Origin: Macrostomum lignano
Lineage: Eukaryota
Assembly (NCBI GenBank): GCA_002269645.1
Contig: NIVC01003689.1
Coordinates: forward strand, 1 to 64,000
Reading direction: 5' to 3'
DNA: 64,000 nucleotides
In this document: positions 8,601 through 58,683 of the stretch, in pieces
Position numbering within the stretch: position 1 is the first letter of the stretch
How the letters are laid out: the number at the start of each line of letters is the position of its first letter
The notes under the pieces: model-generated
What the model was told of the DNA's origin: nothing
Database searches by the model: none
What the model saw: only the letters and a program-made list of their open reading frames with translations
Made by a program: the position numbers and the translations under genes

Positions 8601-11600
8601 TAATGATCATGGGGGATTGTTCATCTGTTAATGATCATGGGGAATTGTTCATCTGGTAATGATCATGGGGGATTGTTCATCTGTTAATGATCATGGGGAA
8701 TTGTTCATCTGGTAATGATCATAGGGGATTGTTCATCTGGTAATGATCATGGGGGATTGTTCATCTGTTAATGATCATGGGGAATTGTTCATCTGGTAAT
8801 GATCATGGGGGATTGTTCATCTGTTAATGATCATGGGGAATTGTTCATCTGGTAATGATCATGGGGAATTGTTCATCTGTTAATGATCATGGGGGATTGT
8901 TCATCTGGTAATGATCATGGGGGATTGTTCATCTGTTAATGATCATGGGGAATTGTTCATCTGGTAATGATCATGGGGGATTGTTCATCTGTTAATGATC
9001 ATGGGGAATTGTTCATCTGGTAATGATCATGGGGGATTGTTCATCTGGTAATGATCATGGGGGATTGTTCATCTGTTAATGATCATGGGGAATTGTTCAT
9101 CTGGTAATGATCATGGGGGATTGTTCATCTGTTAATGATCATGGGGATTGTTCATCTGGTAATGATCATGGGGGATTGTTCATCTGTTAATGATCATGGG
9201 GAATTGTTCATCTGGTAATGATCATGGGGGATTGTTCATCTGGTAATGATCATGGGGAATTGTTCATCTGGTAATGATCATGGGGGATTGTTCATCTGGT
9301 AATGATCATGGGGATTGTTCATCTGTTAATGATCATGGGGAATTGTTCATCTGGTAATGATCATGGGGGATTGTTCATCTGTTAATGATCATGGGGATTG
9401 TTCATCTGTTAATGATCATGGGAAATTGTTCATCTGGTAATGATCATGGGGAATTGTTCATCTGTTAATGATCATGGGGAATTGTTCATCTGGTAATGAT
9501 CATGGGGGATTGTTCATCTGGTAATGATCATGGGGAATTGTTCATCTGGTAATGATCATGGGGGATTGTTTATCTGGTAATGATCATGGGGGATTGTTCA
9601 TCTGTTAATGATCATGGGGAATTGTTCATCTGGTAATGATCATGGGGGATTGTTCATCTGTTAATGATCATGGGGAATTGTTCATCTGGTAATGATCATG
9701 GGGAATTGTTCATCTGGTAATGATCATGGGGGATTGTTCATCTGGTAATGATCATGGGGGATTGTTCATCTGTTAATGATCATGGGGAATTGTTCATCTG
9801 GTAATGATCATGGGGGATTGTTCATCTGTTAATGATCATGGGGAATTGTTCATCTGTTAATGATCATGGGAAATTGTTCACCTGTCAATGATGACGGGGA
9901 ATTGTTCACCTGTCAATGATCATGGAGAATTGTTCATCTGTCAATGATCATGGAGAATTATTCATCTGTCAATGATGACGGGGAATTGTTCACCTGTCAA
10001 TGATCATGGAGAATTGTTCATCTGTCAATGATGACGGGGAATTGTTTATCTGGTAATGATCATGGGGAATTGTTCATCTGTCAAATATCACGGGGAATTA
10101 TTCATCTTCCAAAGCTCACCAGGAAATTAATACGAGTTAGTGGTAGCAGAAAGCAGATAAAGCTCACACAGAATTGCTCGAATGCCGTCTTATTTTATAC
10201 CTAGCTCGATATGTATGGTAAACAGCAATGATGGTGATAATTTGGGGGTTGACCAATACCAACCTCAATGGTCGAATTGCGAAAGAGACGAATACGATAA
10301 AAAACAGAAACAAAAAATCTCTATGTAAAAAATAGCCAGCCAGCGTACAGTGCATGTTTTTTTCTTAATTAATTAACACGGTCTGGCGTCCTTTAACTGT
10401 TCCACTCCATTCGGTGTGTGTTCATTATACACCAACCTCGTGCCTGAGCACTTCTCCCATTCACTTTGGGCACTTTCTTCCCAAGTCAGGCAGACAGCCC
10501 TCTTCAAACATGCTTCATTTAAAGCGGCCTCTCTAATCCTTTTTCCGTCTTCTCTTCCCTTTTTCTTTCCATCTTTATTGCGCTCAGGCTTCTTCGAACT
10601 CAGTTATACATATGTAGCTTTATTATTGATGAGTTCGCGCTTCATTAGCTCCAATTATATCATATATAATTGTAGCGCATTATATTTTCCTCACAAATTG
10701 TGTTCTCTAAGTTTCCTTAGTTCGATTTTCGATGGGCGTCTGTGTATTATAGTCCACTTTTATAATAATAATATATAATAGTCCCACTGTTAGTTTATTA
10801 CTTTTTGCGGCGCTTCAATGCCCATCAGAATCGACTCCCTGCGCTTGATTTTGGGTACGTGAGCCTCCCAGATCCTCAGTTGCTGGGCCAGCCCCAGATC
10901 CTCAGTTGCTGGGCCAGCCCCAGATCCTCAGTTGCTGGGCCGGCCTCCCAGATTCTCAGTTGCTGGGCCAGCCTCCCAGAGTGTCAGTTGCTGGGCCAGC
11001 CTCCCAGATCCTCAGTTGCTGGGCCACCAGCCTCGCAGATCCTCAGTTGCTGGGCCAGCCTCCCAGAGTGTCAGTTGCTGGGCCAGCCTCCCAGAGTGTC
11101 AGTTGCTGGGCCAGCCTCCCAGATCCTCAGTTGCTGGGCCAGCCTCCCAGATCCTCAGTTGCTGGGCCAGCCTCCCAGATCCTCAGTTGCTGGGCCAGCC
11201 TCCCAGATCCTCAGTTGCTGGGCCACCAGCCTCGCAGATCCTCAGTTGCTGGGCCAGCCTCCCAGAGTGTCAGTTGCTGGGCCAGCCTCCCAGAGTGTCA
11301 GTTGCTGGGCCAGCCTCCCAGATCCTCAGTTGCTGGGCCACCAGCCTCGCAGATCCTCAGTTGCTGGGCCAGCCTCCCAGATCCTCAGTTGCTGGGCCAG
11401 CCTCCCAGAGTGTCAGTTGCTGGGCCAGCCTCCCAGATCCTCAGTTGCTGGGCCAGCCTCCCAGATCCTCAGTTGCTGGGCCAGCCTCCCAGATTCTCAG
11501 TTGCTGGGCCAGCCTCCCAGATTCTCAGTTGCTGGGCCAGCCTCCCAGATTCTCAGTTGCTGGGCCAGCCTCCCAGATCCTCAGTTGCTGGGCCAGCCTC

Positions 11601-14600
11601 CCAGATCTTCAGTTGCTGGGCCAGCCTTCCAGATCCTCAGTTGCTGGGCCAGTCTCCCAGATCCTCAGTTGCTCGGCCAGCCTCCCAGAACGTCGTCAAT
11701 ATTAACCCCCACACAGCCTCTGAACTCACTAACTACTAGCAACTTGCCAACCCCCTTTCCTTCACAGACAATGTACAGAGACTGGCTGTGCTCAGTAAAG
11801 TTCAACGTGTACGACATTAACGACTCCTTAACCCAAGTGAACCCCTGCTCCGAATGGTGCCAATCAGTTGAGACCGAATGTCCTTATTTGACCCCGTCTG
11901 ACGACTTCTCAAATGCCGGCGAACCAGTGTTTCTCTGTCACGGTGAGTTTTGCTGTTCATGCATAGGCGTTTCATTTGGCAACTGTCATTTTATGGTGCG
12001 ATACTTGTAGTGCAAGACGGCGCCAAAGCCACTGCAAGATGGCGCCAAAGCCACTGCAAGACGGCGCCAAAGCTAAAATTAAGTTGGAGCCAAAGCTACT
12101 GCAAAATAGCGCCAAAGCTACTGCAAGGTGGCGCCAAAGCTACTGCAAGGTGGCGCCAAAGCTACTGCAAGATAGCGCCAAAGCTACTGCAAGGTGGCAC
12201 CAAAGCTACGGCAAAATAGCGCCAAAGCTACTGCAAGATAGCGCCAAAGCTACTACAAGGTTGCGCCAAAGCTACTGCAAGGCGGCGCCAAAGCTACTGC
12301 AAGATAGCGCCAAAGCTACTGCAAGGTGGCGCCAAAGCTACTGCAAAATAGCGCCAAAGCTACTGCAAGGTGGCGCCAAAGCTACTGCAAAATAGCGCCA
12401 AAGCTACTGCAAGGTGGCGCTAAGCTACTGCAAGGCGGCGCCAAAGCTACTGCAAGATAGCGCCAAAGCTACTGCAAGGTGGCGCCAAAGCTACGGCAAA
12501 ATAGCGCCAAAGCTACTGCAAGGTGGCGCCAAAGCTACTGCAAAATAGCGCCAAAGCTACTAAAATTATTGCAACGCTTTTTTCGCAAGGAGGTTCCTGA
12601 GGCTTTTTTGCCAGTAAATTGGTGCTGCTGGGAACCACATGCCCCCTAGCGCAAAATTTCATGCAAAATGAAATTATACCTTGCCACTTGCAATGTTTAT
12701 TAAATAAAAAAACATTGGCTTTTAATGAGACCTTTCTAGTACCAACCCGACTGCTCACCATAGTGCCGCTCTGGGAAATTGCTACTCAAGCTGGCGGCAC
12801 TTAGGCCAGACTGAATATGCCTAAAAGCGGGTGTTTGTGTCAGCATGCCTGCCTGCCATGCCTGTCACTGTGTAAGCCTACCCAGGGATAGCGTAATTCG
12901 ATACTGTAATTAAGGCATGTTTTTGTTCCGCTTTGCAATTTTTATTCCCCCCATGGGAATATTGCGATTTTTTATCATTTCGTTTATATAGTTAATAGAG
13001 CAGCTTTGGGATTTTGGGAGTATGTTTTGAGATTGCTAAGTGTCGGTATTTGTAGGCGGTGTGCCAATGCTGAGCTATTGATCATAGAGTGACCATTCTG
13101 GTACGACAGTGACAATTCTCATATTGGAGCGACAATTCTTAGCATTGGAGTGACAATCCTTAGCATTGGAGTGACAATCCTTAGCATTGGAGTGACAATC
13201 CTTAGTATTGGAGTGACAATCCTTAGCATTGGAGTGACAATCCTTAGCATTGGAGTGACAATCCTTAGCATTGGAGTGACAATCCTTAGCATTGGAGTGA
13301 CAATCCTTAGCATTGGAGTGACAATCCTTAGTATTGGAGTGACAATCAGTATTGGAGTGACACCCTTAGCATTGGAGTGACAATCCTTAGCATTGGAGTG
13401 ACAATCCTTAGCATTGGAGTGACAATCAGTATTGGAGTGACACCCTTAGCATTAGAGTGACAATCCTTAGCATTGGAGTGACAATCCTTAACATTGGAGT
13501 GACAATCCTTAACATTGGAGTGACAATCCTTAGCATTGGAGTGACAATCCTTAGCATTGGAGTGACAATCCTTAGTATTGGAGTGACAATCAGTATTGGA
13601 GTGACACCCTTAGCATTGGAGTGACAATCCTTAGCATTGGAGTGACAATCCTTAACATTGGAGTGACAATCCTTAGCATTGGAGTGACAATCCTTAGCAT
13701 TGGAGTGACAATCCTTAGTATTGGAGTGACAATTCTTAGCATTGGAGTGACAATTCTTAGCATTGGAGTGACAATCCTTAGCATTAAAGTGACAATCATT
13801 AGCAATGGAGTGACAATACTTAGCATTGGAGTGACAATACTTAGCATTGGAGTGACAATCCTTAAAATTGGAGTGACAATGCTTAGCATTGAGTTCACAA
13901 TCCTTAGCATTGGAGTGACAATCCTTAGCATTGGAGTGACAAAAATCAGTATTGGAGTGACAATCAGTATTGGAGTGACAATCAGTATTGGAGTGACAAT
14001 CAGTATTGGAGTGACAAAAATCAGTATTGGAGTGACAATCAGTATTGGAGTGACAATCAGTATTGGAGTGACAATCAGTATTGGAGTGACAATCAGTATT
14101 GGAATGACAATCAGTATTGGAGTGACAATCAGTATTGGAGTGACAATCAGTATTGGACTGACAATCAGTATTGGAGTGACAATCAGTATTGGAGTGACAA
14201 TCAGTATTGGAGTGACAAAAATCAGTATTGGAGTGACAAAAATCAGTATTGGAGTGACAATCAGTGAAAACGCCCGGGAGTGATAACCCAAGCAGTGAAG
14301 TGACAATCCGAGAGTGCCAATTCCAACAGCACTATACTCACACCTACCCCCCTCTTGTTCTTGGCCCATTGCAGAGGACAGCTACAAGGGCACCAGAATG
14401 TCAGATCGGTGCACCGGGTACACTCAATGTTGTTGCTACGCACCTTCAAGTTCGAATCGGACTAATATCAAGATAATGTGCACATCACCAGCTTCCCTAG
14501 GCAGAAAGACCGCATCATCAGCCGCATCAGATTCTGATTTTAGTGTGGACTTTATTAATAACGCCAATTTAACCGATTCTAACAATGCTACTAATAGTAG

Positions 14601-16649: not shown

Positions 16650-17054
16650 ATGGACCAGCCATCGGTAGCGGCCGGCGATTGGCCAGCCGCCAACGAGCAC
16701 GAGAACGAATACGAAGTTGAAAAGATTCTGCGGGTGAAAGGTCGGGGCCATACAATGCGCTATTTGATCAAATGGAAGGGCTTTGGGGACGATTGGAACA
16801 CGTGGGAGCCAAGGAGTAACCTGATTGGCTGCGAGGCTGCTCTGCAAGCGTTCACCAGTGAACAGCAGCAAAAGAAGCGGCAGCAGAAACGAAAAAATAA
16901 GAAACAGCCGCAGGCGGTGAGTTTTTGTGTCATCTCGTAGACAGACACTAAGACATACAGGCAGACAGTCAGACAGGCAGGCAGGCAGAGAGACAGGCAG
17001 GTAGACAGAGAGACAGACAGACAGGCAGACACTAAGACATACAGGCAGACAGAC

Positions 17055-17087
<33 letters not shown>

Positions 17088-17118
17088 CTAAGACATACAG
17101 GCAGACAGACAGACACTA

Positions 17119-17157
<39 letters not shown>

Positions 17158-17172
17158 GAGACAAATACAGGC

Positions 17173-17235
<63 letters not shown>

Positions 17236-20163
17236 GAGACAAATACAGGCAGACAGACAGACAGACAGACAGACAGGTCAATCTCATTATTTCGTTAATC
17301 CAAAACACATGCCGCCTCCTGTTAGGCGGAAGCACCTCAGACAGCGGTCGATTTTCCGAAAGAAGACCAACAGCAGCAGCAACAGGAGCAGCAGGAGCGG
17401 CAAAACAGCCAGTCGGACAGTCAGGGTCTGTTCAACAAATTCCGAAGCGCATCCGGCAGCTCTACTTTCACAGCAGTCGCATCCCATCCAGCTGTCGATG
17501 ATTCCGCCGCATCGCTCACAAATTTCTATTACAAATCCGGAGGCGAATTAGACAGATTCTTGGACTCCCTCTCGGCACTGGACCATTGCCCGACTGTTGC
17601 TTCTCTGCCCGACTGTCTGTCCTCTTCGCCTTCGAAAGCTTCTTCCAGGCTGATTGCGGCTGTAGAGGCCAACTCTCTGGGCGATTTGATTCGCCTGCTG
17701 CACTCGCCAGCTTCATCGGCTGCTGGCGCTTGCGATCTGAATTGGGCCGATGAGGCGCGGAATGGAGAAACGGCGCTGACTGCCGCTCTGAGGCAGGGCA
17801 ATGTGGCAGCAGTTCGGCTGCTGCTGCAGCACGGCTGTGCCGTCAACGCCTGGTGTCAGCTGCCTGCCGCATCGGCTTTGTCAGCTTCTTCATCCGGTGA
17901 TGCTGCTGGAAATGACCGGCAGCAGCAGCAATTCAAAGATCCCATAGTGGTTGCCAGGTGATTATCTTTCTTTCCTAGGTACATACGAGTGTACAGCGGC
18001 CCCTGACTTTATTTACCGTTATGCATGTACACTTCACTGTGGCTTGGGGGTTGGGCCTCAAACTGGGCGTTAATTGCACGAGCAGAGCCAAGCCAAGATT
18101 TTTGTTATTATGATACCACAATAGTCGCTCCTAACCCTAAGACGCGAAAAATAGCCTTCTTAGAATTTGGTTCCAGGTCATCCCCGGTTCTTAGAAATTG
18201 CACCTCCCCTTTCTTAGAAATCTCCCTCAATTTTTAGAAATCACCCCCGGTTATTAGAAATCACCCTCAGTTCTTAGAAATCACCCTCAGTTCTTAGAAA
18301 TCACCCTCAGTTCTTAGAAATCACCCTCAGTTCTTAGAAATCACCCTCAGTTCTTAGAAATCACCCTCAGTTCTTAGAAATCACCCTCAGTTCTTAGAAA
18401 TCACCCTCAGTTCTTAGAAATCACCCTCAGTTCTTAGAAATCACCCTCAGTTCTTAGAAATCACCCTCAGTTCTTAGAAATCACCCTCAGTTCTCAGAAA
18501 TCACCCTCAGTTCTTAGAAATCACCCTCAGTTCTTAGAAATCACCCTCAGTTCTTAGAAATCACCCTCAGTTCTTAGAAATCGCCCTTACCCATTTCTTG
18601 GAAATCACCCCAGTTCTTGGAAATTACCCCCGTTCTTAGAAATCGCCCTTACCCATTTCTTGGAAATCACCCCAGTTCTTGGAAAGTACCCCAGTTCTTA
18701 GAAATCGCCCTTACCCATTTCTTGGAAATCACCCCATTTCTTGGAAATCACCCCAGTTCTTGGAAATCACCCCAGTTCTTAGAAATCGCCCTTACCCATT
18801 TCTTGGAAATCACCCCATTTCTTGGAAATCACCCCATTTCTTGGAAATCACCCCAGTTCTTAGAAATCGCCCTTACCCATTTCTTGAAAATCACCCCAGT
18901 TCTTAGAAATTACCCCAGTTCTTAGAAATCGCCCTTACCCATTTCTTGGAAATCACCCCAGTTCTTAGAAATTACCCCAGTTCTTAGAAATCGCCCTTAC
19001 CCATTTCTTGGAAATCACCCCAGTTCTTAGAAATCGCCCTTACCAATTTCTTGGAAATCACCCCAGTTCTTGGAAATCACCCCAGTTCTTGGAAATCACC
19101 CCAGTTCTTGAAAATCACCCCAGTTCTTGGAAATCACCCCAGTTCTTGGAAATCACCCCAGTTCTTGGAAATCACCCCAGTTCTTGGAAATCACTCCAGT
19201 TCTTGGAAATCACCCCAGTTCTTGGAAATCACTCCAGTTCTTGGAAATCACCCCAGTTCTTGGAAATCACCCCAGTTCTTGGAAATCACCCCAGTTCTTG
19301 GAAATCACCCCAGTTCTTGGAAATCACCCCAGTTCTTGGAAATCACCCCAGTTCTTGGAAATCACTCCAGTTCTTGGAAATCACCCCAGTTCTTGGAAAT
19401 CACTCCAGTTCTTGGAAATCACCCCAGTTCTTGGAAATCACCCCAGTTCTTGGAAATCACCCCAGTTCTTGGAAATCACCCCAGTTCTTGGAAATCACCC
19501 CAGTTCTTGGAAATCACCCCAGTTCTTGGAAATCACCCCAGTTCTTGGAAATCACCCCAGTTCTTGGAAATCACCCCAGTTCTTGGAAATCACCCCAGTT
19601 CTTGGAAATCACCCCAGTTCTTGGAAATCACCCCAGTTCTTAGAATTCGCCTCCCCATTGTCACTCGCAGAAGCTGCCCACTGGCAGGCGAGCTGCTCTG
19701 CTTGCTGCAGCGTCACTGCGACGCCGTTTCGCAGGCTCTGGCCGACTGCGCCCAATCAGCTCTCGGTAGCTCAGCTCGGCTGCTCGCCCCAGTCGGCCGT
19801 TTGCACATTCTTCCCAGGCCTGGCCTGTCTGTTCAATTCGACATTGCCGATCGGCTGCCGTCGCTGCCTTGCGTACTGTTGCTAGGCAACGCCGTGTTCA
19901 ACACCGGAGCCGAAGCTACAGCGGCGCCGTTGGTTCGACTCCGGGGCAGGTGCTCAGTGCGAGAGGTTTGGCTGAACAACGTGCGCCAGATGCCGCTGAG
20001 TCAGGCCGGCTGTTTCATTTGCACCTGCGCCCCGCTCCGTGTCGGCTCCAACACTGTCGGCTTGGTGCCCAGCGGGTCGTTTCGGCTGCCAGCCGACGGC
20101 AGATTCCGGCTATTGGTTAGAGCGTACGAAGTGAAAGTGTTGGCCGAGAGTGGGGCTGCTTAG
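16650..20163 (+). CDS. MPHOSPH8: MPP8 (MPHOSPH8)-like protein: chromodomain + ankyrin repeats + MPP8 C-terminal domain, ~463 aa, 3 exons
   Basis: Exons 16650-16916 (gcg|gtgagt), 17326-17957 (ttag|, ag|gtgatt), 19671-20163 (cgcag|; alternative acceptor at 19644), phases 0 and 2 consistent, 1392 nt. Chromodomain YEVEKIL...YLIKWKGFGDDWNTWEPRSNL; ankyrin NGETALTAALRQGNVAAVRLLLQHGCAVN; C-terminus VRLRGRCSVREVWLNN...RLLVRAYEVKV parallels human MPP8 ARLCGPCSVQAVVLND...KLLIGAYRVQL (from memory). Confidence 0.85.
16938..17276. repeat. (ACAG)n microsatellite in MPP8-like intron 1
   Basis: Direct inspection. Confidence 0.95.
18180..19643. repeat. 19-20-bp minisatellite TTCTT(A/G)GAAATCACCC(C/T)CAG in MPP8-like intron 2
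   Basis: About 70 copies, ending 27 nt before the exon 3 acceptor. Confidence 0.95.
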
Positions 20164-20204: not shown

Positions 20205-23200
20205 GACAGACAGACACACAGACACACATAGAACATGTCTATGACACACAGACACACATAGAACATGGCTATGACACACAGACACACATAGAACATGTCT
20301 ATGACACACAGACACACAGAGAACATGTCTATGACACACAGACACACATAGAACATGGCTATGACACACAGACACACATAGAACATGGCTATGACACACA
20401 GACACACATAGAACATGGCTATGACACACAGACACACATATAACATGGCTATGACACACAGACACACATATAACATGTCTATGACACACAGACACACATA
20501 GAACATGTCTATGACACACAGACACACATAGAACATGTCTTTGACACACAGACACACATATAACATGTCTATGACACACAGACACACATAGAACATGTCT
20601 ATGACACACAGACACACATAGAACATGTCTATGACACACAGACACACATAGAACATGGCTATGACACACAGACACACATATAACATGGCTATGACACACA
20701 GACACACATAGAACATGTCTATGACACACAGACACACATAGAACATGGCTATGACACACAGACACACATAGAACATGGCTATGACACACAGACACACATA
20801 TAACATGGCTATGACACACAGACACACATAGAACATGTCTATGACACACAGACACACATATAACATGTCTATGACACACAGACACACATAGAACATGTCT
20901 ATGACACACAGACACACATAGAACATGTCTATGACACACAGACACACATATAACATGTCTATGACACACAGACACACATAGAACATGGCTATGACACACA
21001 GACACACATAGAACATGTCTATGACACACAGACACACATAGAACATGGCTATGACACACAGACACACATAGAACATGTCTATGACACACAGACACACATA
21101 TAACATGTCTATGACACACAGACACACATAGAACATGTCTATGACACACAGACACACAGAGAACATGTCTATGACACACAGACACACATAGAACATGTCT
21201 ATGACACACAGACACACATATAACATGTCTATGACACACAGACACACATAGAACATGGCTATGACACACAGACACACATAGAACATGTCTATGACACACA
21301 GACACACATAGAACATGTCTATGACACACAGACACACATAGAACATGTCTATGACACACAGACACACATAGAACATGTCTATGACACACAGACACACATA
21401 GAACATGTCTATGACACACAGACACACATAGAACATGTCTTTGACACACAGACACACATAGAACATGTCTATGACACACAGACACACATAGAACATGGCT
21501 ATGACACACAGACACACATGGAACATGTCTATGACACACAGACACACATAGAACATGTCTTTGACACACAGACACACATAGAACATGGCTATGACACACA
21601 GACACACATAGAACATGGCTATGACACACAGACACACATAGAAAATGTCTATGACACACAGACACACATAGAACATGTCTATGACACACAGACACACATA
21701 GAACATGTCTATGACACACAGACACACATAGAACATGTCTATGACACACAGACACACATAGAACATGTCTATGGACACACAGACACACATAGAACATGTC
21801 TATGACACACAGACACACATAGAAAATGTCTATGACACACAGACACACATAGAAAATGTCTATGACACACAGACACACATAGAACATGGCTATGACACAC
21901 AGACACACATAGAACATGTCTATGACACACAGACACACATAGAACATGTCTATGACACACAGACACACATAGAACATGTCTATGACACACAGACACACAT
22001 AGAACATGTCTTTGACACACAGACACACATAGAACATGTCTATGACACACAGACACACATAGAACATGGCTATGACACACAGACACACATGGAACATGTC
22101 TATGACACACAGGCACACATAGAACATGTCTTTGACACACAGACACACATAGAACATGGCTATGACACACAGACACACATAGAACATGGCTATGACACAC
22201 AGACACACATAGAACATGGCTATGACACACAGACACACATAGAACATGGCTATGACACACAGACACACATAGAACATGGCTATGACACACAGACACACAT
22301 AGAACATGGCTATGACACACAGACACACATAGAAAATGTCTATGACACACAGACACACATAGAACATGTCTATGACACACAGACACACATAGAACATGGC
22401 TATGACACACAGACACACATATAACATGTCTATGACACACAGACACACATAGAACATGTCTATGACACACAGACACACATAGAACATGTCTTTGACACAC
22501 AGACACACATAGAACATGTCTATGACACACAGACACACATAGAACATGGCTATGACACACAGACACACATGGAACATGTCTATGACACACAGGCACACAT
22601 AGAACATGTCTTTGACACACAGACACACATAGAACATGGCTATGACACACAGACACACATAGAACATGGCTATGACACACAGACACACATAGAACATGGC
22701 TATGACACACAGACACACATAGAACATGGCTATGACACACAGACACACATAGAACATGGCTATGACACACAGACACACATAGAACATGGCTATGACACAC
22801 AGACACACATAGAAATGTCTATGACACACAGACACACATAGAACATGTCTATGACACACAGACACACATAGAACATGTCTATGACACACAGACACACATA
22901 GAACATGTCTATGACACACAGACACACATATAACATGGCTATGACACACAGACACACATATAACATGTCTATGACACACAGACACACATAGAACATGTCT
23001 ATGACACACAGACACACATAGAACATGTCTATGACACACAGACACACATATAACATGTCTATGACACACAGACACACATAGAACATGTCTATGACACACA
23101 GACACACATAGAACATGTCTATGACACACAGACACACATAGAACATGTCTATGACACACAGACACACAGAGAACATGTCTATGACACACAGACACACATA

Positions 23201-25385
23201 GAACATGGCTATGACACACAGACACACATAGAACATGGCTATGACACACAGACACACATAGAACATGTCTATGACACACAGACACACATATAACATGGCT
23301 ATGACACACAGACACACATAGAACATGTCTATGACACACAGACACACATATAACATGTCTATGACACACAGACACACATAGAACATGTCTATGACACACA
23401 GACACACATAGAACATGTCTATGACACACAGACACACATAGAACATGTCTATGACACACAGACACACATAGAACATGTCTATGACACACAGACACACATA
23501 GAACATGTCTATGACACACAGACACACATAGAACATGGCTATGACACACAGACACACATAGAACATGTCTATGACACACAGACACACATATAACATGTCT
23601 ATGACACACAGACACACATAGAACATGTCTATGACACACAGACACACAGAGAACATGTCTATGACACACAGACACACATAGAACATGTCTATGACACACA
23701 GACACACATAGAACATGTCTATGACACACAGACACACATAGAACATGTCTATGACACACAGACACACATAGAACATGTCTATGACACACAGACACACATA
23801 GAACATGTCTATGACACACAGACACACATAGAACATGTCTATGACACACAGACACACATAGAACATGTCTATGACACACAGACACACATAGAACATGTCT
23901 ATGACACACAGACACACATAGAACATGTCTATGACACACAGACACACATAGAAATGTCTATGACACACAGACACACATAGAACATGTCTATGACACACAG
24001 ACACACATAGAACATGTCTATGACACACAGACACACATAGAACATGTCTATGACACACAGACACACATAGAACATGTCTTGACACACAGACACACATAGA
24101 ACATGTCTATGACACACAGACACACATAGAACATGGCTATGACACACAGACACACATAGAACATGTCTATGACACACAGACACACATAGAACATGTCTAT
24201 GACACACAGACACACATAGAACATGGCTATGACACACAGACACACATAGAACATGGCTATGACACACAGACACACATAGAACATGGCTATGACACACAGA
24301 CACACATAGAACATGGCTATGACACACAGACACACATAGAACATGGCTATGACACACAGACACACATAGAACATGGCTATGACACACAGACACACATAGA
24401 AATGTCTATGACACACAGACACACATAGAACATGTCTATGACACACAGACACACATAGAACATGTCTATGACACACAGACACACATAGAACATGTCTATG
24501 ACACACAGACACACATAGAACATGTCTATGACACACAGACACACATAGAACATGTCTATGACACACAGACACACATAGAACATGGCTATGACACACAGAC
24601 ACACATATAACATGGCTATGACACACAGACACACAAAGAACATGGCTATGACACACAGACACACATAGAACATGGCTATGACACACAGACACACATAGAA
24701 CATGGCTATGACACACAGACACACATAGAACATGTCTATGACACACAGACACACATAGAACATGTCTATGACACACAGACACACATAGAACATGTCTATG
24801 ACACACAGACACACATAGAACATGTCTATGACACACAGACACACATAGAACATGTCTATGACACACAGACACACATAGAACATGTCTATGACACACAGAC
24901 ACACATAGAAATGTCTATGACACACAGACACACATAGAACATGTCTATGACACACAGACACACATAGAACATGTCTATGACACACAGACACACATAGAAC
25001 ATGGCTATGACACACAGACACACATATAACATGGCTATGACACACAGACACACAAAGAACATGGCTATGACACACAGACACACATAGAACATGGCTATGA
25101 CACACAGACACACATAGAACATGGCTATGGACACACAGACACACATAGAACATGTCTATGACACACAGACACACATAGAACATGTCTATGACACACAGAC
25201 ACACATAGAACATGTCTATGACACACAGACACACATAGAACATGTCTATGACACACAGACACACATAGAAAATGTCTATGACACACAGACACACATAGAA
25301 CATGGCTATGACACACAGACACACATAGAACATGGCTATGGACACACAGACACACATAGAACATGGCTATGACACACAGACACAT
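20205..25385. repeat. 30-bp satellite ATGACACACAGACACACATAGAACATGTCT (~5.2 kb)
   Basis: About 170 copies; source of the artefactual 1252-aa and 540-aa minus-strand ORFs. Confidence 0.97.
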
Positions 25386-27200: not shown

Positions 27201-30200
27201 ATGCAGTCCGACGCCAGTCGCGAAGACTTGTTCCGAGCCCTATTCAGAGCCAAGTCTCTCCTAGTTGAATGCGACCAGCTTCATCGAGCCTATGCTAGAC
27301 AGTGCCGCCTGGTCAGTTCGCTGGAAGCCGAACTGGCCAGAGCTAGAGAATCGGCTGATCGTTGCTCAGCATTGAAAGCTGCCCTGTCATTAACCGAAGC
27401 TAACCTGCAGCGAACTCGGCACGAATTAGCGGAGGCTCGACTAGAATTGAGTCAGTTGAAGCAACCGCAACGTCGCGCGTCTAAACGAATAAGCAGCCGC
27501 GCCACCGATCCTGGGGTGTCAGCAGTTCAACCTAAGCGTCCTAGGCGTGTTGATTTGGACGCCACTTCTTCTAGCGATGAGGATAATGATGAGGATAAAC
27601 CGCAACCTCAGGCGGAAGAATCCACCAGGCCTAAGAGCTCCAATCCTCACAGTGAAGCTCAAATACATGTACAAGAGCCTCTGTGCTCCTCCAATCAATC
27701 CGTTGTGATTGTTTCCGATGAAACAGCAAAGACTGCTGCTAATAGAAAGTTGTCTATAGAGCAGTGCCTGTCTTCTGTTAATCAGCGTCCAAGAAGAACG
27801 CTTCAAATGTACGACAAAGATTGCAGCCGTAGAAATAAACATCAGCGCTACAGACAGAGTCTTTCAGCTAGTTGCGGTGCTGACTTCTCTAAGTCTAAAA
27901 CATCCCAGTCTCCAAAAACTGGCGTTATTCGGCGAAGGCATTCCCACCGGGTAGATCTGGATGCTACATCCAGCGAAGAGGAAGGCAATGGAAGCGGCGC
28001 TGCTAAAAGCAAAAGACGGCGTCCATTAGAGCCTCCTTTGCCGATCAAGTCGTTTGCCTATAACACGAGGTCCAATGCGAAACTTTCGTCTGGCATTATT
28101 GAAATAAGTGCAGAATGTCGAGATGAAGCATCGTCTGATGTCACTATTGTCCTGCAGGATGAGGATGCAAATGGCACTGCAACAGATAAGCCTATTGTTG
28201 TGCAGAATGCAGATGGCACTGCAACAGATAAGCCTATTGTTGTGCAGAATGCAGATGGCACTGCAACAGATAAGCCTATTGTTGTGCAGAATGCAGATGG
28301 CACTGCAACAGATGAGCCCATTGTGCAGAATGCAGATGGCACTGCAACAGATGAGCCCATTGTGCAGAATGCAGATGGCACTGCAACAGATGAGCCCATT
28401 GTGCAGAATGCAGATGGCACTGCAACAGATGAGCCCATTGTGCAGAATGCAGATGGCACTGTAACAGATAAGCGCATTGTGCAGAATGCAGATGGCACTG
28501 CAACAGATAAGCGCATTGTGCAGGATGCAGAAGGCACTGCAACAGATGAGTCCATTGTGCAGGATGCAGATGGCACTGCAACAGACGAGCCCATTGTGCA
28601 GGATGCAGATGGCACTGCAACAGATGAGCCCATTGTGCAGGATGCGGATGGCAATGCAACAGACGAGCCCATTGTGCAGGATGCAGATGGCACTGCAACA
28701 GATGAGCCCATTGTGCAGGATGCAGATGGCACTGCAACAGATCAACCCATTGTGCAGGATGCAGATGGCACTGCAACAGATGAGCCCATTGTGCAGGATG
28801 CAGATGGCACTGCAACAGATCAACCCATTGTGCAGGATGCAGATGGCACTGCAACAGATCAACCCATTGTTTTGCAGAATGCAGATGGCACTGCAACAGA
28901 TGACCCTATTGTTTTGCAGGATGCACATGGCACTGCAACAGATGAGCCTATTGTGCAGGATGCAGATGGCACCACGACAGATGAGCCCATTGTTGAGCAG
29001 AATGAGGATTCAGATAGTGTTACATCAGACGAGGAATCATCTGTTTTACATGTTGCTGTAGAAGATTCTAAGGAATCTGCTGTTATGGAAGAAGCTAAGG
29101 AACCATCTGATTCGTTTGTTGGCCCAGTGGAAGAAGCTAAGGAACCATCTGATTCGTTTGTTGGCCCAGTGGAAGAAGCTAAGGAACCATCTGATTCGTT
29201 TGTTGGCCCAGTGGAAGAAGCTAAGGAACCATCTGATTCGTTTGTAGGCCCAGTGGAAGAAGCTAAGGAACCATCTGATTCGTTTGTTGTCGCAGTGGAA
29301 GAAGCTAAGGAACCATCTGATTCGTTTGTTGTCGCAGTGGAAGAAGCTAAGAAATCATCTGATTCGTTTGTTGTCGCAGTGGAAGAAGCTAAGAAATCAT
29401 CTGATTCGTTTGTTGTCGCAGTGGAAGAAGCTAAGAAATCATCTGATTCGTTTGTTGTCGCAGTGGAAGAAGCTAAGAAATCATCTGATTCGTTTGTTGT
29501 CGCAGTGGAAGAAGCTAAGGAACCATCTGTTAATGATGCAATGGAAGACTCAAATGAATCGTTTAGTGTGACGGTTGTGGAAGATTCACTGCACAATGAG
29601 AATAGAAAATTCATTGAACCTTCTATTAGCGAAGATTTCACATCTGAAAAAGATGTCACACTTCAAAATGCTAACAATACTACTGAGCTAAAAGTTGAAC
29701 ATGCGAAGAAAATTGATCCAGCAGAAGATCCTGTCGAATCGAGACTTTCCATAGCAGAAGTAGCAACAGATTCGACTCAAACGGTTGTAGAAAGACAAGA
29801 AAGTGTAGTCCGAGTCAAAACAACTGCATCAGCTTCATCGAGTGCCGCTTCTAGCGATCCTCATCATCATCGAATTGCCAATTGTTCCACAACAAATAGC
29901 GAAGACTTCGACAATGCTTCGTGCAATCTGGCAATTGCCGATTTTAACGAAGACGACGAATTTGACAAAGCCTCGGTGGCAAGTTCAATTAATAATCGAC
30001 AGGTTTTGCCGTCGCTCTTGTCGCCGATCAGATCGCCCGACTCCGAGACGGTCGACCAGCCTGCGGCGCCCAGCGGCGAATCCGCCAGCCGATTGAAACG
30101 GCGCTCTTTTCCTGTCGACGATTTTGTTCGCGATTTGAATACTTCGTCCGCGTTTCGAGCGGTTGCTAGCGCAATACCGGACGGTTGGCCTCTCGATCCA

Positions 30201-30725
30201 GTGATAGATTGGACATTCTTTTTGTCCCACAGGATCGACATGCTCGAATCTTTACCAGCCGAACCGTTAAGCTATTTAGACCGGATTAATGCCGGGATAG
30301 CCGCTATTATTGATAATAGAGACGATAATAACAGCGCCGATTGTTGCCTTGACGACGACGAATTAGATTATCTGCTTCAGCCGGGTTCAATTGCCGAACT
30401 GTGCCGCGGAGGCGGCGTTCAACCGCCTTGGATTGTCAGCCGGTTGATTCCATTTCTTGAGCGGCTGTTAGATAAAACAGCTGATCGAAACAAAGACTCT
30501 AGAATTGGTTCGTTGCGCCGTCGCTGCCTGGCCTGCCTAATGATTGTCGGGCCGCTGTCGCCTCAGGCGGCCGCCCGATCCGCCGTTCGCTGGATCAACG
30601 CCGACCAGCCGGGGCCTGGCGACGTTATTGTTGGCCAAGTGAAACGGTTTCTAAAAATGAGACCGGCCCTGTTGAAAACTCTGTTCGTTACTGAGAAATT
30701 TCCAGTTTGCCTTCTGGCTGCTTGA
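27201..30725 (+). CDS. Intronless 1174-aa protein: N-terminal coiled coil, acidic disordered middle with coding tandem repeats, helical C-terminal domain; possible ICE1 (little elongation complex subunit 1)
   Basis: Uninterrupted ATG-to-TGA ORF with complex sequence at both ends. Coding repeats of 13-14 aa (DADGTATDEPIVQ) and 14 aa (EEAKEPSDSFVGPV). N-terminal ALxxxKxxxxxxDxLxxxYxxxC spacing matches the recalled human ICE1 N-terminus. The ORF itself is high confidence; the ICE1 identity is tentative. Confidence 0.75.
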   Translation: MQSDASREDLFRALFRAKSLLVECDQLHRAYARQCRLVSSLEAELARARESADRCSALKAALSLTEANLQRTRHELAEARLELSQLKQPQRRASKRISSRATDPGVSAVQPKRPRRVDLDATSSSDEDNDEDKPQPQAEESTRPKSSNPHSEAQIHVQEPLCSSNQSVVIVSDETAKTAANRKLSIEQCLSSVNQRPRRTLQMYDKDCSRRNKHQRYRQSLSASCGADFSKSKTSQSPKTGVIRRRHSHRVDLDATSSEEEGNGSGAAKSKRRRPLEPPLPIKSFAYNTRSNAKLSSGIIEISAECRDEASSDVTIVLQDEDANGTATDKPIVVQNADGTATDKPIVVQNADGTATDKPIVVQNADGTATDEPIVQNADGTATDEPIVQNADGTATDEPIVQNADGTATDEPIVQNADGTVTDKRIVQNADGTATDKRIVQDAEGTATDESIVQDADGTATDEPIVQDADGTATDEPIVQDADGNATDEPIVQDADGTATDEPIVQDADGTATDQPIVQDADGTATDEPIVQDADGTATDQPIVQDADGTATDQPIVLQNADGTATDDPIVLQDAHGTATDEPIVQDADGTTTDEPIVEQNEDSDSVTSDEESSVLHVAVEDSKESAVMEEAKEPSDSFVGPVEEAKEPSDSFVGPVEEAKEPSDSFVGPVEEAKEPSDSFVGPVEEAKEPSDSFVVAVEEAKEPSDSFVVAVEEAKKSSDSFVVAVEEAKKSSDSFVVAVEEAKKSSDSFVVAVEEAKKSSDSFVVAVEEAKEPSVNDAMEDSNESFSVTVVEDSLHNENRKFIEPSISEDFTSEKDVTLQNANNTTELKVEHAKKIDPAEDPVESRLSIAEVATDSTQTVVERQESVVRVKTTASASSSAASSDPHHHRIANCSTTNSEDFDNASCNLAIADFNEDDEFDKASVASSINNRQVLPSLLSPIRSPDSETVDQPAAPSGESASRLKRRSFPVDDFVRDLNTSSAFRAVASAIPDGWPLDPVIDWTFFLSHRIDMLESLPAEPLSYLDRINAGIAAIIDNRDDNNSADCCLDDDELDYLLQPGSIAELCRGGGVQPPWIVSRLIPFLERLLDKTADRNKDSRIGSLRRRCLACLMIVGPLSPQAAARSAVRWINADQPGPGDVIVGQVKRFLKMRPALLKTLFVTEKFPVCLLAA

Positions 30726-31850: not shown

Positions 31851-32289
31851 TTGTGTCCTTCTATCCTGATTTTCGTTGAGTCCTGACTGTCTCTATCCTG
31901 GTTGTGTATGTGTGTGTCCTAGTTGCGTTTCAGTTTGTGTACCAGCTGTTTCGGGTTGTCTTTGTTTTTTAGGTTTTCTTTATTTCTTCGACTTTAGTGT
32001 CTTTGTATCCTTTGTGTCTATTTCTACCTTATACTACCGGTACATGTCTGTTTGCCAGATGGTCAATCCATAGAAAACAAGACCGATCACGCCTTCATTC
32101 GACAATAAAGTTGTAAATATAAATATACTTCAATTTTTTATTTTTGCTAGGCTGTTCCGTTGGCAGGTGGTTATGTGCAGAAAAAACATGTACTCGATTT
32201 ATTGTGCTTTAAGTGCTGTGCTGACTCATTCATTTGTTGAAAACAGCTGCTGCACTCTGGTGCGCAAGCGGTTGCAAACTGGGACATCG

Positions 32290-33265
32290 CCAGCCTCCCA
32301 GATCCTCAGTTGCTGGGCCAGCCTCCCAGATCCTCAGTTGCTGGGCCAGCCTCCCAGATCCACAGTTGCTGGGCCAGCCTCCCAGATCCTCAGTTGCTGG
32401 GCCAGCCTCCCAGATCCTCAGTTGCTGGGCCAGCCTCCCAGATCCTCAGTTGCTGGGCCAGCCTCCCAGATCCACAGTTGCTGGGCCAGCCTCCCAGGTC
32501 CTCAGTTGCTGGGCCAGCCTCCCAGATCCTCAGTTGCTGGGCCAGCCTCCCAGATCCTCAGTTGCTGGGCCAGCCTCCCAGATCCTCAGTTGCTGGGCCA
32601 GCCTCCCAGATCCACAGTTGCTGGGCCAGCCTCCCAGGTCCTCAGTTGCTGGGCCAGCCTCCCAGATCCACAGTTGCTGGGCCAGCCTCCCAGGTCCTCA
32701 GTTGCTGGGCCAGCCTCCCAGGTCCTCAGTTGCTGGGCCAGCCTCTCAGATCTTCAGTTGCTGGGCCAGCCTCCCAGAGTGTCAGTTGCTGGGCCAGCCT
32801 CCCAGATCCTCAGTTGCTGGGCCAGCCTCCCAGATCCTCAGTTGCTGGGCCAGCCTCTCAGATCTTCAGTTGCTGGGCCAGCCTCTCAGATCCTTAGTTG
32901 CTGGGCCAGCCTCTCAGATCCTTAGTTGCTGGGCCAGCCTCTCAGATCCTGAGTTGCTGGGCCAGCCTCCCAGATCCTCAGTTGCTGGGCCAGCCTCCCA
33001 GATCCTCAGTTGCTGGGCCAGCCTCCCAGAGTGTCAGTTGCTGGGCCAGCCTCCCAGGTCTTCAGTTGCTGGGCCAGCCTCCCAGATCCTCAGTTGCTGG
33101 GCCAGCCTCCCAGATCCTCAGTTGCTGGGCCAGCCTCCCAGATCCTCAGTTGCTGGGCCAGTCTTCCAAATCCTCAGTTGCTGGGCCAGCCTCCCAGATC
33201 CTTGGTTGCTGGGCCACCAGTCTCCCAAGTCCTCAGGTGCTGAGCCAGCCTCCCAGATCTTTAGT
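32290..33265. repeat. 28-bp minisatellite GCCTCCCAGATCCTCAGTTGCTGGGCCA (locus 2)
   Basis: Same unit and orientation as 10862-11690. Confidence 0.95.
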
Positions 33266-33679
33266 TGCTGGGTTACGTGGCTTCCCGGACGTTTCAGCTG
33301 TTCTTATATTCGTATTCGGCCTTGTGCATACCAAATTTGTACTTTAGCTGTAAAATGGGGCGTCTGCAGAACAGATAAAGTGAATCAAAAACTTCTCAGG
33401 GGTACTTGCAGCCCCCCCCCCCCGGAAGTCACAAGCAGGTTGAAATATCCGGTCGAAAAACTAATAGAATGAACGATTTGTCAGTTAAATGTTTTCAAAG
33501 CAAAGAAGCAATAAATACCAAATTGTCAAAAATTCCAAAAGCAGTTTTTATTTTTATTTTCAGTCAATTAGTTAAATTACGTGCGTAGTTAGTTAGTAGT
33601 TAGTTAAATTAATTAGTTAGTTCAATTAGTTAAAGTCACCAGAATTAGTTCTACAAGCCATTGCCGTTGCATTGATGCT

Positions 33680-57144: not shown

Positions 57145-58683
57145 CTAAACTGGCAATAAATCTTCCAGACAGGACATCACAGCGGTGGCGTGACTCGCCA
57201 GCATCGAGGCCCACAGTGTCACCTCGCCATTCACCGTGAAATCGTCGCCTTGTGACTGCTCGCCTTCACGGTCTTTAGACGAGCACAAACCAGCAAGCCA
57301 AGCGTCACTTGATGGTCGACAGCCTTCATGGCTACTACTAGCAGTAGCATCAGCAGCATTCGCCGATTGTTTAACAATTAGTTTAGAAGCCAGCTCGGGA
57401 ACTGTGCCAGCAGAGTTAGGCAGCAAATTCAACTCTTCAATAACCATCCAGATGTCCCACTTAGCAACTAAAGAAGCCGTGACTAAATCCGATCGGACAG
57501 AATCGCCAAAGTAGGCAATCTTTCTGGATTGAGTTTTATCATCACATTGTCCAAGAAATTTCCATTCAAATTCTTCCGCACAACCGCTGATGTAAGCTTT
57601 ACCCCGACCGAATGGAAGGCGTTCGAAGCTTTCGTAGCTGCTGTAGTAACTAGCCGAGCTTGAATAATACGATTTGGACTTTTTCATAAAAAAGTTCGGC
57701 TTCCCAGCCTCCAACAGGCAGGCGTCGAATAAATCCGGCCAGTCCTGACCCAGAATGTGCTCAAGATGTCTGGCAGCGAACTGAGCCTCAGAGGATGATA
57801 ATAAAAAGACATAAATGCCGCGTTGGCGAAGCTGTTTGAGCAGCACTCGAACTCCGGAGGTCACCGGGCACAGGTAAGCGCTGGGATTAGCTAATACATA
57901 TTTAAAATAAGCGCCATCATCTGAGTAGACGTGAAGCAAAGCTGAGTAGCAATCCTGCCAAAGGCTGCTGCAGTCAGTCAGTGGGGTGGTTCGATTCTCT
58001 TCTGCCAAGTCCACCTGTTGATGAAGCCAACTTGCTTTTAGTTGAATATCAGCACGTATATGTAGCATCATACTGTACTGCACTGTACTGTACTGTACTG
58101 CAACCCACCTGGCCATTTTCAGTTTTTTGTGCTCACAAAGCCCCAAATGAATGTGGCTGCGCAACCAGAGGTGGTCCTGGAGCCCCCCCCTTCCCCAACG
58201 CACCAATTTAGCGAATATCAAACTGCCAGGCAAGTCGTAGTGAGTATCCTGAAATCGATAGCGACCATCTCGTTCGTGTCGATAGCCGCTATTGAGAACG
58301 GCTTGAGCAAACGGCGGCCGACCGTCTGGCGGATAAGCTAATTTAGCGTCCAACTGTTTGCTGCCGTGACAAACTCTCAATGCTGCACCTGTGGGCGACA
58401 TCAAAAGCAGATTGCCGCCTATTTTGTCTAAAATAGCGGCCCTACTCATTAAGCCACACTCAATTGGCGATGACCAGTCAAGACTGCGCAGATGATCGGG
58501 ATAGCCGCGATGCTTAACTAAATAGTCTGCCAATTGAACGTAAACTAGACTGACCAGATTGCGCAACTGATAACGGCCCAGCGTGAGATCGATGTCGAAA
58601 CCGACTGCGTCGTAGTCAAACAGACGCTCCATATTTATTTGGTGTTGTCTGACTAACCGACTAAATGGACGGAGTCGGTGCAT
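57145..58683 (-). CDS. NT5DC1: HAD-superfamily 5'-nucleotidase domain protein (NT5DC1-like), ~449 aa, 2 exons
   Basis: Motif I GFDIDLTLGRY; later AGKPNFF and YFGDSVRSDL. Exons 58683-58204 and 58014-57145; in-frame 189-nt intron (ttg|GTGCGT...CAACAG|gtg) whose removal restores FAKLVDL. Arg-rich N-terminus resembles a mitochondrial presequence. Confidence 0.88.
   Translation of the reverse strand: MHRLRPFSRLVRQHQINMERLFDYDAVGFDIDLTLGRYQLRNLVSLVYVQLADYLVKHRGYPDHLRSLDWSSPIECGLMSRAAILDKIGGNLLLMSPTGAALRVCHGSKQLDAKLAYPPDGRPPFAQAVLNSGYRHERDGRYRFQDTHYDLPGSLIFAKLVRWGRGGLQDHLWLRSHIHLGLCEHKKLKMARWVAVQYSTVQYSMMLHIRADIQLKASWLHQQVDLAEENRTTPLTDCSSLWQDCYSALLHVYSDDGAYFKYVLANPSAYLCPVTSGVRVLLKQLRQRGIYVFLLSSSEAQFAARHLEHILGQDWPDLFDACLLEAGKPNFFMKKSKSYYSSSASYYSSYESFERLPFGRGKAYISGCAEEFEWKFLGQCDDKTQSRKIAYFGDSVRSDLVTASLVAKWDIWMVIEELNLLPNSAGTVPELASKLIVKQSANAADATASSSHEGCRPSSDAWLAGLCSSKDREGEQSQGDDFTVNGEVTLWASMLASHATAVMSCLEDLLPV

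Follow-up and report, generated by a model that had tools for sequence, protein, structure and literature searches.

In the Mlig_3_7 assembly (GCA_002269645.1) of the flatworm Macrostomum lignano, we analyzed the initial 64 kb of contig NIVC01003689.1, a stretch hereafter called the window, the numbering of which is identical to that of the contig. On the forward strand, at positions 16650-20163, the window contains a three-exon gene for a protein of 463 amino acids (aa), in which an N-terminal chromodomain, a disordered linker, an ankyrin block and a C-terminal beta domain follow one another in the order known from vertebrate MPP8, the chromatin-reading subunit of HUSH, the human silencing hub complex. 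We consider it probable that in M. lignano this locus represents the MPP8 (MPHOSPH8) family, most likely as the orthologue; a HUSH-type mechanism we infer from the human protein. The C-terminal domain carries this assignment: given that it is the only MPP8-specific part of the protein, it provides the discriminating test of family, and several independent sequence comparisons lend good support to its homology with the corresponding domain of MPP8.

Gene structure and annotation

The segment 16000-21000 of the window was read for the gene model. The features of the gene, all on the forward strand, are as follows.

16650-16916, + strand: exon 1 (267 nt; ATG at 16650, donor GTGAGT; aa 1-89, phase 0), containing the chromodomain and the beginning of a basic KRKNKK stretch, as judged from the translation, the splice sites and identity to the GenBank protein
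16710-16856, + strand: chromodomain (aa 21-69; cage residues Y21/W42/F45 plus E53; Pfam Chromo E 2.3e-13)
16917-17325, + strand: intron 1 (409 bp, GT..AG), 83% of which is (AGAC)n-type tandem repeat
17326-17957, + strand: exon 2 (632 nt; acceptor TTAG, donor GTGATT; aa 90-300, final codon split), containing the Q/S-rich disordered linker and then ankyrin repeats (tblastn, 100% identity)
17650-17850, + strand: two ankyrin repeats (aa 198-264), which match vertebrate MPP8 repeats 3 and 4
17958-19670, + strand: intron 2 (1713 bp, GT..AG), 84% of which is a 19-bp tandem repeat in about 72 copies
19671-20163, + strand: exon 3 (493 nt; acceptor GCAG, TAG stop at 20161-20163; aa 300-463), encoding the latter half of the final ankyrin repeat with its long helix, followed by the C-terminal beta domain
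19702-20136, + strand: MPP8-type C-terminal domain (aa 311-455), the predicted equivalent of human helix alpha10 plus the PINIT-like beta-sandwich

The exon lengths leave 0, 2 and 1 nucleotides modulo 3, and splicing yields 1392 nt with a single open frame of 463 codons. Along 100% of its length, the translated protein matched with 100% identity the GenBank entry 'hypothetical protein BOX15_Mlig011412g1' [Macrostomum lignano], the gene for which is annotated on the same contig at identical coordinates. UniProt labels BOX15_Mlig011412g1 only as a 'Chromo domain-containing protein', and no mention of the gene id Mlig011412 was found in the literature searched. Given that the Mlig_3_7 annotation was built by genome-guided RNA-seq assembly with StringTie, TACO and TBONE (PMC5730564), co-transcription of the three exons has transcript support, by way of the annotation rather than of individual reads. 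The locus is thus shown to be an intact, annotated three-exon gene. An earlier note, made from the DNA sequence alone, had proposed the same exon count, exon coordinates and phases and a product of ~463 aa; all of these were correct, as established by the GT/AG borders, the open frame and the GenBank identity, and its premise that the exons are co-transcribed is backed by the RNA-seq-based annotation.

Several UniProt entries from M. lignano (P0002-P0008 and P0013) had the appearance of paralogues. They were rejected as diverged copies, because they carry out-of-frame translations of the same gene; entry P0005, for example, contains the +1-frame open reading frame (ORF) 17309-17551 of this gene. 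Given this out-of-frame content, P0002-P0008 are frameshifted models and not evolutionary evidence. It has been reported that the ML2 assembly is more error-prone, and that the sequenced line contains large duplications (PMC5730564).

Homology of the C-terminal domain

In human MPP8, residues ~548-860 form five ankyrin repeats, the long last helix of which (alpha10) is packed on a PINIT-like beta-sandwich at 741-860 (bioRxiv 10.1101/2023.12.21.572340). As the mark of the family at the sequence level, the stretch homologous to human residues ~729-860 was taken. The reference structures for vertebrate MPP8 were 3LWE and 3R93 for the chromodomain, and 8QFB for the ankyrin repeats and the PINIT-like C-terminal domain. 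When the whole flatworm protein was compared with PDB sequences by phmmer, chain 8qfb_B was matched at E 8.5e-5, with flatworm residues 311-454 aligned to residues 194-333 of the chain. When the C-terminal 171 aa alone were compared with 177,635 PDB sequences, 8qfb_B was the sole match at E<=10, at a weak E of 0.12. Moreover, when the human segment of 140 aa was compared with the flatworm protein by BLASTP, a single alignment was obtained that ran from end to end (32 bits, E 4e-6, 149 columns with 25% identity).

A hidden Markov model (HMM) of the C-terminal domain was then used that comprised 10 vertebrate and three spider MPP8 domains, gathered with a human-spider alignment, and zero flatworm sequences. 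This model matched flatworm residues 312-455 over model positions 10-149 of 151, with 25.0 bits and an E-value of 7.4e-10 at Z=1, which corresponds to about 4e-5 when rescaled to a proteome of 50,000 proteins. The isolated domain scored 28.3 bits, whereas the best of 5000 shuffles that preserved its composition reached 9.3 bits; hhalign returned a probability of 92.4% (E 5.2e-7). The window contains 375 six-frame ORFs of 50 aa or more; when these were searched with the same HMM, the exon-3 ORF alone matched (25.2 bits; the next ORF scored 3.4), well beyond what chance would give.

Positions invariant among human, spider and flatworm were found in the middle of the domain, as G-x-N within the motif G(S/P)N, and at its extreme end, as L-x-x-x-A-Y-x-V, where the three lineages read LL(V/I)xAY(E/K/R)V. 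AlphaFold2 (AF2) predicted a long helix (305-331) and then nine strands, a secondary structure that fits the published alpha10 helix and nine-stranded sandwich. Pfam lacks a model of the MPP8 C-terminal domain, the human sequence itself matching 0 families, and the missing Pfam match in the flatworm protein is therefore no counter-evidence. The core of the earlier note, which had called the gene an MPP8, is upheld by these data, in that the three parts are arranged as in MPP8 and independent sequence tests show the C-terminal domain to be homologous to the human one. Its C-terminal exon does align to the MPP8 domain (by phmmer, BLASTP, HMM and hhalign), whereas the description of that match as close went too far for an identity of ~25%.

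Chromodomain and linker

Compared with PDB sequences by phmmer, the flatworm chromodomain matched the chromodomains of CBX5, CBX1, HP1 and MPP8 with E-values of 1e-10 to 1e-8. When the flatworm chromodomain was aligned by phmmer with that of human MPP8, its residues Y21, W42 and F45 fell on the aromatic-cage positions and E53 was conserved, in agreement with the earlier claim that the Y, W and F of the cage are retained; their human counterparts we take to be F59/W80/Y83 and E91, respectively. When modelled by AF2 with an alignment, the chromodomain reached a predicted local distance difference test (pLDDT) score of about 86-91. The best Foldseek match of the model in the PDB was the MPP8 chromodomain 3lwe, at a template modelling (TM) score of 0.82, with HP1, Rhino, CBX and SUV39H1 close behind.

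Judged by its matches, the chromodomain is by type a predicted reader of methylated histone H3 lysine 9 (H3K9me), and it gives no family assignment when taken alone. In the phmmer comparison with the PDB, CBX5, CBX1 and HP1 scored 39-43 bits (CBX5, 43), MPP8 scored 38 and CDYL lay within 38-43; with scores this nearly equal for CBX5, CBX1, HP1, MPP8 and CDYL, the chromodomain cannot assign the family.

The linker that follows (aa 70-190, ~120 aa) is Q/S/A-rich, of low complexity and predicted to be disordered. Right after the chromodomain, the heptapeptide QKRKNKK at flatworm aa 78-84 (window ~16881-16901) is identical to aa 72-78 of P0010, one of the spider proteins described below. This shared QKRKNKK may be a conserved nuclear localization signal or a nucleic-acid-binding hinge.

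Ankyrin repeats and compactness

Within the ankyrin block, Pfam recognized Ank_2 at aa 198-263 (E 6.9e-7) and Ank at aa 235-264 (E 8.2e-5). AF2 predicted helix pairs at 191-215 and 239-257 with pLDDT 70-88, as well as a third helix pair at 295-331, the long second helix of which runs into the beta domain. In multiple alignments, aa 198-228 paired with vertebrate MPP8 repeat 3, and aa 235-264 (NGETALTAALRQGNVAAVRLLLQHGCAVNA) paired with vertebrate repeat 4 (GGETALMKACKRGNxDIVRLLLEYGADCN). The counterpart of the final vertebrate repeat, with its long helix, lies at aa 293-331 and is preceded by a 30-residue low-complexity insert at aa 262-294; a possible degenerate repeat was also seen in the alignments at aa ~163-185. 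The ankyrin block directly precedes the C-terminal domain, as expected of a member of the MPP8 family.

Three ankyrin repeats are therefore clear, perhaps four, compared with five in 8QFB. The flatworm protein is compact (463 aa versus 860 aa in human) because its linker measures ~120 aa instead of ~430 aa and because the two N-terminal vertebrate ankyrin repeats are missing or degenerate; the earlier description of a compact protein of roughly half the human length with fewer repeats was accurate. By its compactness, the flatworm protein marks the parts of MPP8 that appear dispensable: the linker for the most part, together with two ankyrin repeats.

Comparison with known relatives

The flatworm protein shares with human and vertebrate MPP8 a chromodomain with a three-residue cage, a disordered linker, an ankyrin block and a C-terminal beta domain, all in the same order. 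Moreover, in each of them the last ankyrin helix enters the beta domain, the protein ends with the motif hhhxAYxV, and the C-terminal homology is full-length. Unlike human MPP8, the flatworm protein has no identified equivalent of the SPOC-binding strand 536-562. The genes also differ: the flatworm gene has 2 introns, and a single exon carries its whole C-terminal domain, which in vertebrate exon fragments is interrupted near GSGILLF.

The spiders Trichonephila, Nephila and Caerostris have unnamed MPP8-like Chromo-Ank proteins (P0010-P0012, P0014), in which Chromo and Ank are likewise combined with this C-terminal domain. In the spider proteins, the C-terminal domain matched that of human MPP8 at E 3e-9, and the chromodomain was 41% identical to the flatworm chromodomain. 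The spider proteins differ from the flatworm protein in being 620-657 aa long, with a longer linker and ~4 ankyrin repeats. When compared directly, the flatworm and spider C-terminal domains matched marginally (E 0.032), the flatworm domain being closer to the human one.

Proteins of the HP1/CBX group (CBX1/3/5 and Drosophila HP1) gave the best-scoring chromodomain matches and have the same methyl-lysine cage. However, HP1 proteins do not have the ankyrin and PINIT-like domains of the flatworm protein, and the flatworm protein does not have a chromoshadow domain. Membership in the HP1/CBX family was rejected, since no chromoshadow Pfam match was found at E<=10 and the C-terminal half of the protein consists of ankyrin repeats and the MPP8-type domain. 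A chromo-ankyrin protein of the cpSRP43 type was also rejected; the flatworm protein contains a single N-terminal chromodomain and no two further ones, and it matches cpSRP43 via the chromodomain only (E 3e-5).

The beta-sandwich of MPP8 has the PINIT fold (bioRxiv 10.1101/2023.12.21.572340), and by homology to MPP8 the flatworm domain should share this fold with the PINIT domains found in Siz/PIAS proteins. In contrast to those proteins, the flatworm domain has neither sequence similarity to them nor a Pfam PINIT match, and no SP-RING accompanies it. The protein with this PINIT-like C-terminal domain is not a SUMO ligase.

Proposed function and HUSH partners

In human MPP8, the PINIT-like module binds DomI of TASOR, DomI is predicted to be structurally dependent on the MPP8 C-terminal domain, and the chromodomain binds methyl-lysine motifs of SETDB1, ATF7IP, G9a and GLP independently of TASOR (bioRxiv 10.1101/2023.12.21.572340). 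By analogy with the human protein, the flatworm chromodomain would bind trimethylated H3K9 (H3K9me3) or H3K9-like methyl-lysine motifs, the PINIT-like domain would bind DomI of a TASOR-like scaffold, and the concave face of the ankyrin block would bind the SPOC domain of that scaffold. Such a complex would recruit an H3K9 methyltransferase to marked chromatin and set up a read-write loop over transcribed repeats, the expected outcome being stronger repression of transposons and repeats. To our knowledge, binding of TASOR DomI is the only role of the PINIT-like domain. The minimal invertebrate HUSH-like system suggested in the earlier note is less well supported than its MPP8 call: such a complex in M. 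lignano appears possible, although we lean slightly towards doubting it.

TASOR was searched for with a query of human residues ~110-640; its first 220 residues (the pseudo-PARP part) were checked against 6tl1_A and matched exactly, save for the loop deletion of that construct. The search, which was word-indexed, returned vertebrate proteins only; it was insensitive to identities of ~25% and missed even full-length human TASOR. Given that the index missed full-length human TASOR, and full-length MPP8 as well, the vertebrate-only result is uninformative about the flatworm. With this kind of protein search, only fragments or short models of vertebrate MPP8 and TASOR were obtained, and its negatives do not equate to absence. 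TASOR-like proteins with a DUF3715-SPOC-DomI arrangement have been reported in invertebrates, the phyla being left unnamed in the text of that paper (PMC10578480). Support for a partner of the flatworm protein is indirect and comes from these invertebrate proteins, the one outside line of support, and from the predicted dependence of DomI on the MPP8 C-terminal domain.

Weighing of alternative explanations

Several observations weigh against assigning the gene to MPP8 or a HUSH-like role to its product. The chromodomain by itself fails to separate MPP8 from HP1, CBX or CDYL, and identity of the C-terminal domain to that of human MPP8 is only ~25%. When 1.84 billion representative proteins were searched exhaustively by phmmer with the C-terminal domain, M. 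lignano copies alone were returned, with no intermediate homologues from other flatworms or lophotrochozoans among these representatives; accordingly, the case for homology is built on profile comparisons and pairwise tests for which the target was chosen. In the AF2 models, pLDDT for the C-terminal domain was 40-60 with a 20-sequence alignment and ~30 without an alignment, and the top 50 Foldseek matches listed from the PDB were all chromodomains, 8QFB not being among these 50. About 3 of the 5 repeats that make up the predicted SPOC-binding surface in human are recognizable. Neither a homologue of TASOR, in the insensitive search described above, nor one of Periphilin, a short and largely disordered protein at which no search was aimed, was found in M. 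lignano. Furthermore, binding of H3K9me3, docking onto TASOR and silencing by the flatworm protein are functions that we infer from human MPP8.

Given that Chromo and Ank are common, promiscuous domains, the protein could be a lineage-specific chromodomain-ankyrin protein assembled by domain shuffling, the C-terminal likeness of which to MPP8 is due to chance or composition. The identity of ~25%, the E of 0.12 obtained when the domain alone was compared with the PDB by phmmer, and the low-confidence AF2 model of the domain, from which no structural match to 8QFB was obtained, would all be compatible with such an origin. We nevertheless regard it as quite improbable, because the match to MPP8 is full-length, collinear and in the same place after the last ankyrin repeat. 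Moreover, at 28.3 bits the domain scored far above the maximum of 9.3 in 5000 shuffles of the same composition, its hhalign probability was 92%, 8QFB was its sole match among 177,635 PDB sequences, the terminal AYxV and the GSN motifs are common to three phyla, and the predicted long helix and 9 strands agree with the description of 8QFB. Less credible still is the view that the locus is a decaying or redundant copy (a pseudogene), one of several in a genome with partial duplication, or else an artefact of annotation pieced together over satellite arrays. UniProt does hold at least 7 other M. lignano models of the gene with apparent frameshifts, the sequenced DV1 line has large duplications, and the gene sits within tandem arrays; however, its frame of 463 codons is uninterrupted, its splice sites are canonical and the cage is conserved, the frameshifted models are out-of-frame translations of the same DNA that stem from the older, error-prone ML2 assembly, and the annotation is based on RNA-seq.

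If the gene is a true MPP8 homologue, as we consider probable, its product could still act outside any HUSH-like complex, the TASOR/Periphilin partnership having been lost from, or never present in, the flatworm lineage. The protein would then be a stand-alone H3K9me reader or adaptor that, for example, bridges H3K9 methyltransferases via its chromodomain or binds another partner via its reduced ankyrin/PINIT-like module. Such a role would be in keeping with the result that no TASOR-like protein was found for M. lignano (in a search that was insensitive), with the smaller predicted SPOC-binding surface left by ~3/5 ankyrin repeats, with a C-terminal domain so divergent that a single-sequence search finds no non-Macrostomum protein, and with the TASOR-independent binding of SETDB1/ATF7IP/G9a/GLP methyl-lysine motifs by the human MPP8 chromodomain. 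We judge it unlikely, though clearly less so than the two preceding explanations, as the PINIT-like domain has been kept end to end and TASOR-like proteins with DomI are reported in invertebrates (PMC10578480). Moreover, the predicted structural dependence of DomI on the MPP8 C-terminal domain suggests that the two co-evolve.

Evolutionary implications

HUSH has been called vertebrate-specific in primary papers (PMC7532188; PMC10915761), and an MPP8 orthologue was stated to be absent in Drosophila and C. elegans (PMC9635835). A 2023 study of invertebrate TASOR-like proteins did not address MPP8 (PMC10578480), and no description of an invertebrate MPP8 with a TASOR-binding domain was found in the literature searched. 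The comparisons made here show that a predicted MPP8 subunit, supposedly vertebrate-only, is also present in a flatworm. Because Chromo, Ank and the same C-terminal domain occur together in spiders, the family appears to predate vertebrates. Furthermore, since members are found in a lophotrochozoan, in chelicerate arthropods and in vertebrates, the protein comparisons point to an origin of the MPP8 family in the bilaterian ancestor or before it, and to its loss in Drosophila and C. elegans. The data also suggest that the pair of reader and scaffold is of ancient origin and that flies and nematodes have lost it.

A broader scenario, which we put forward tentatively and hold to be rather doubtful, is that the MPP8-TASOR core dates at least to the protostome-deuterostome ancestor, and that M. 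lignano, over half of whose genome is repeats, runs a stripped-down HUSH-like silencing of transposons and possibly of intronless transgenes. If this were true, ancestral HUSH function would be directly testable outside vertebrates. M. lignano is amenable to transgenesis and RNA interference (PMC5730564); being both tractable and very repeat-rich, it is a reasonable place to study the ancestral complex. Together, the flatworm and spider proteins would supply the other half of the TASOR interface, and they complement the 2023 report of invertebrate TASOR-like proteins. At present, the result stands as an annotation upgrade of a 'hypothetical protein' together with a modest evolutionary point, and not as a new mechanism.

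Surroundings of the gene

Tandem arrays, 31 in number, account for 41% of the window (minisatellite or satellite arrays with units of 4-58 bp and up to 172 copies), and many of them produce long spurious ORFs on both strands, which are repeat artefacts. Upstream of the MPP8-like gene, a 22-bp array stops 168 bp short of the ATG. Downstream, a 5.2-kb array at 20213-25384 (30-bp unit, 172 copies, 97% identical) begins 50 bp past the stop codon, so that the 3' untranslated region and the poly(A) site of the gene must lie in or before this satellite. A 28-bp unit (GCCAGCCTCCCAGATCCTCAGTTGCTGG) was found in two arrays 20 kb apart, at 10862-11689 and 32289-33272; the presence of one unit in two separate arrays suggests a dispersed, possibly transposon-borne, minisatellite family. 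No Rfam families and no tRNAs were found in the window.

Two other long ORFs were noted. At 27201-30725 on the + strand lies an uncharacterized intronless ORF of 1174 aa, for which the annotation gives a gene with a product of 1097 aa. The N-terminus of this ORF is coiled-coil-like; acidic coding repeats of 13 aa (~21 copies) and 14 aa (~10 copies) are also present, as is a non-repetitive C-terminal region. This ORF was checked as a candidate partner of the MPP8-like protein and was set aside, as it matched no Pfam family and gave only a low-complexity match in the PDB. On the - strand, at 57145-58683, an ORF of 512 aa contains a clear 5'-nucleotidase family domain (PF05761, E 1.2e-37) and probably corresponds to a single large exon in a cytosolic 5'-nucleotidase-like gene.

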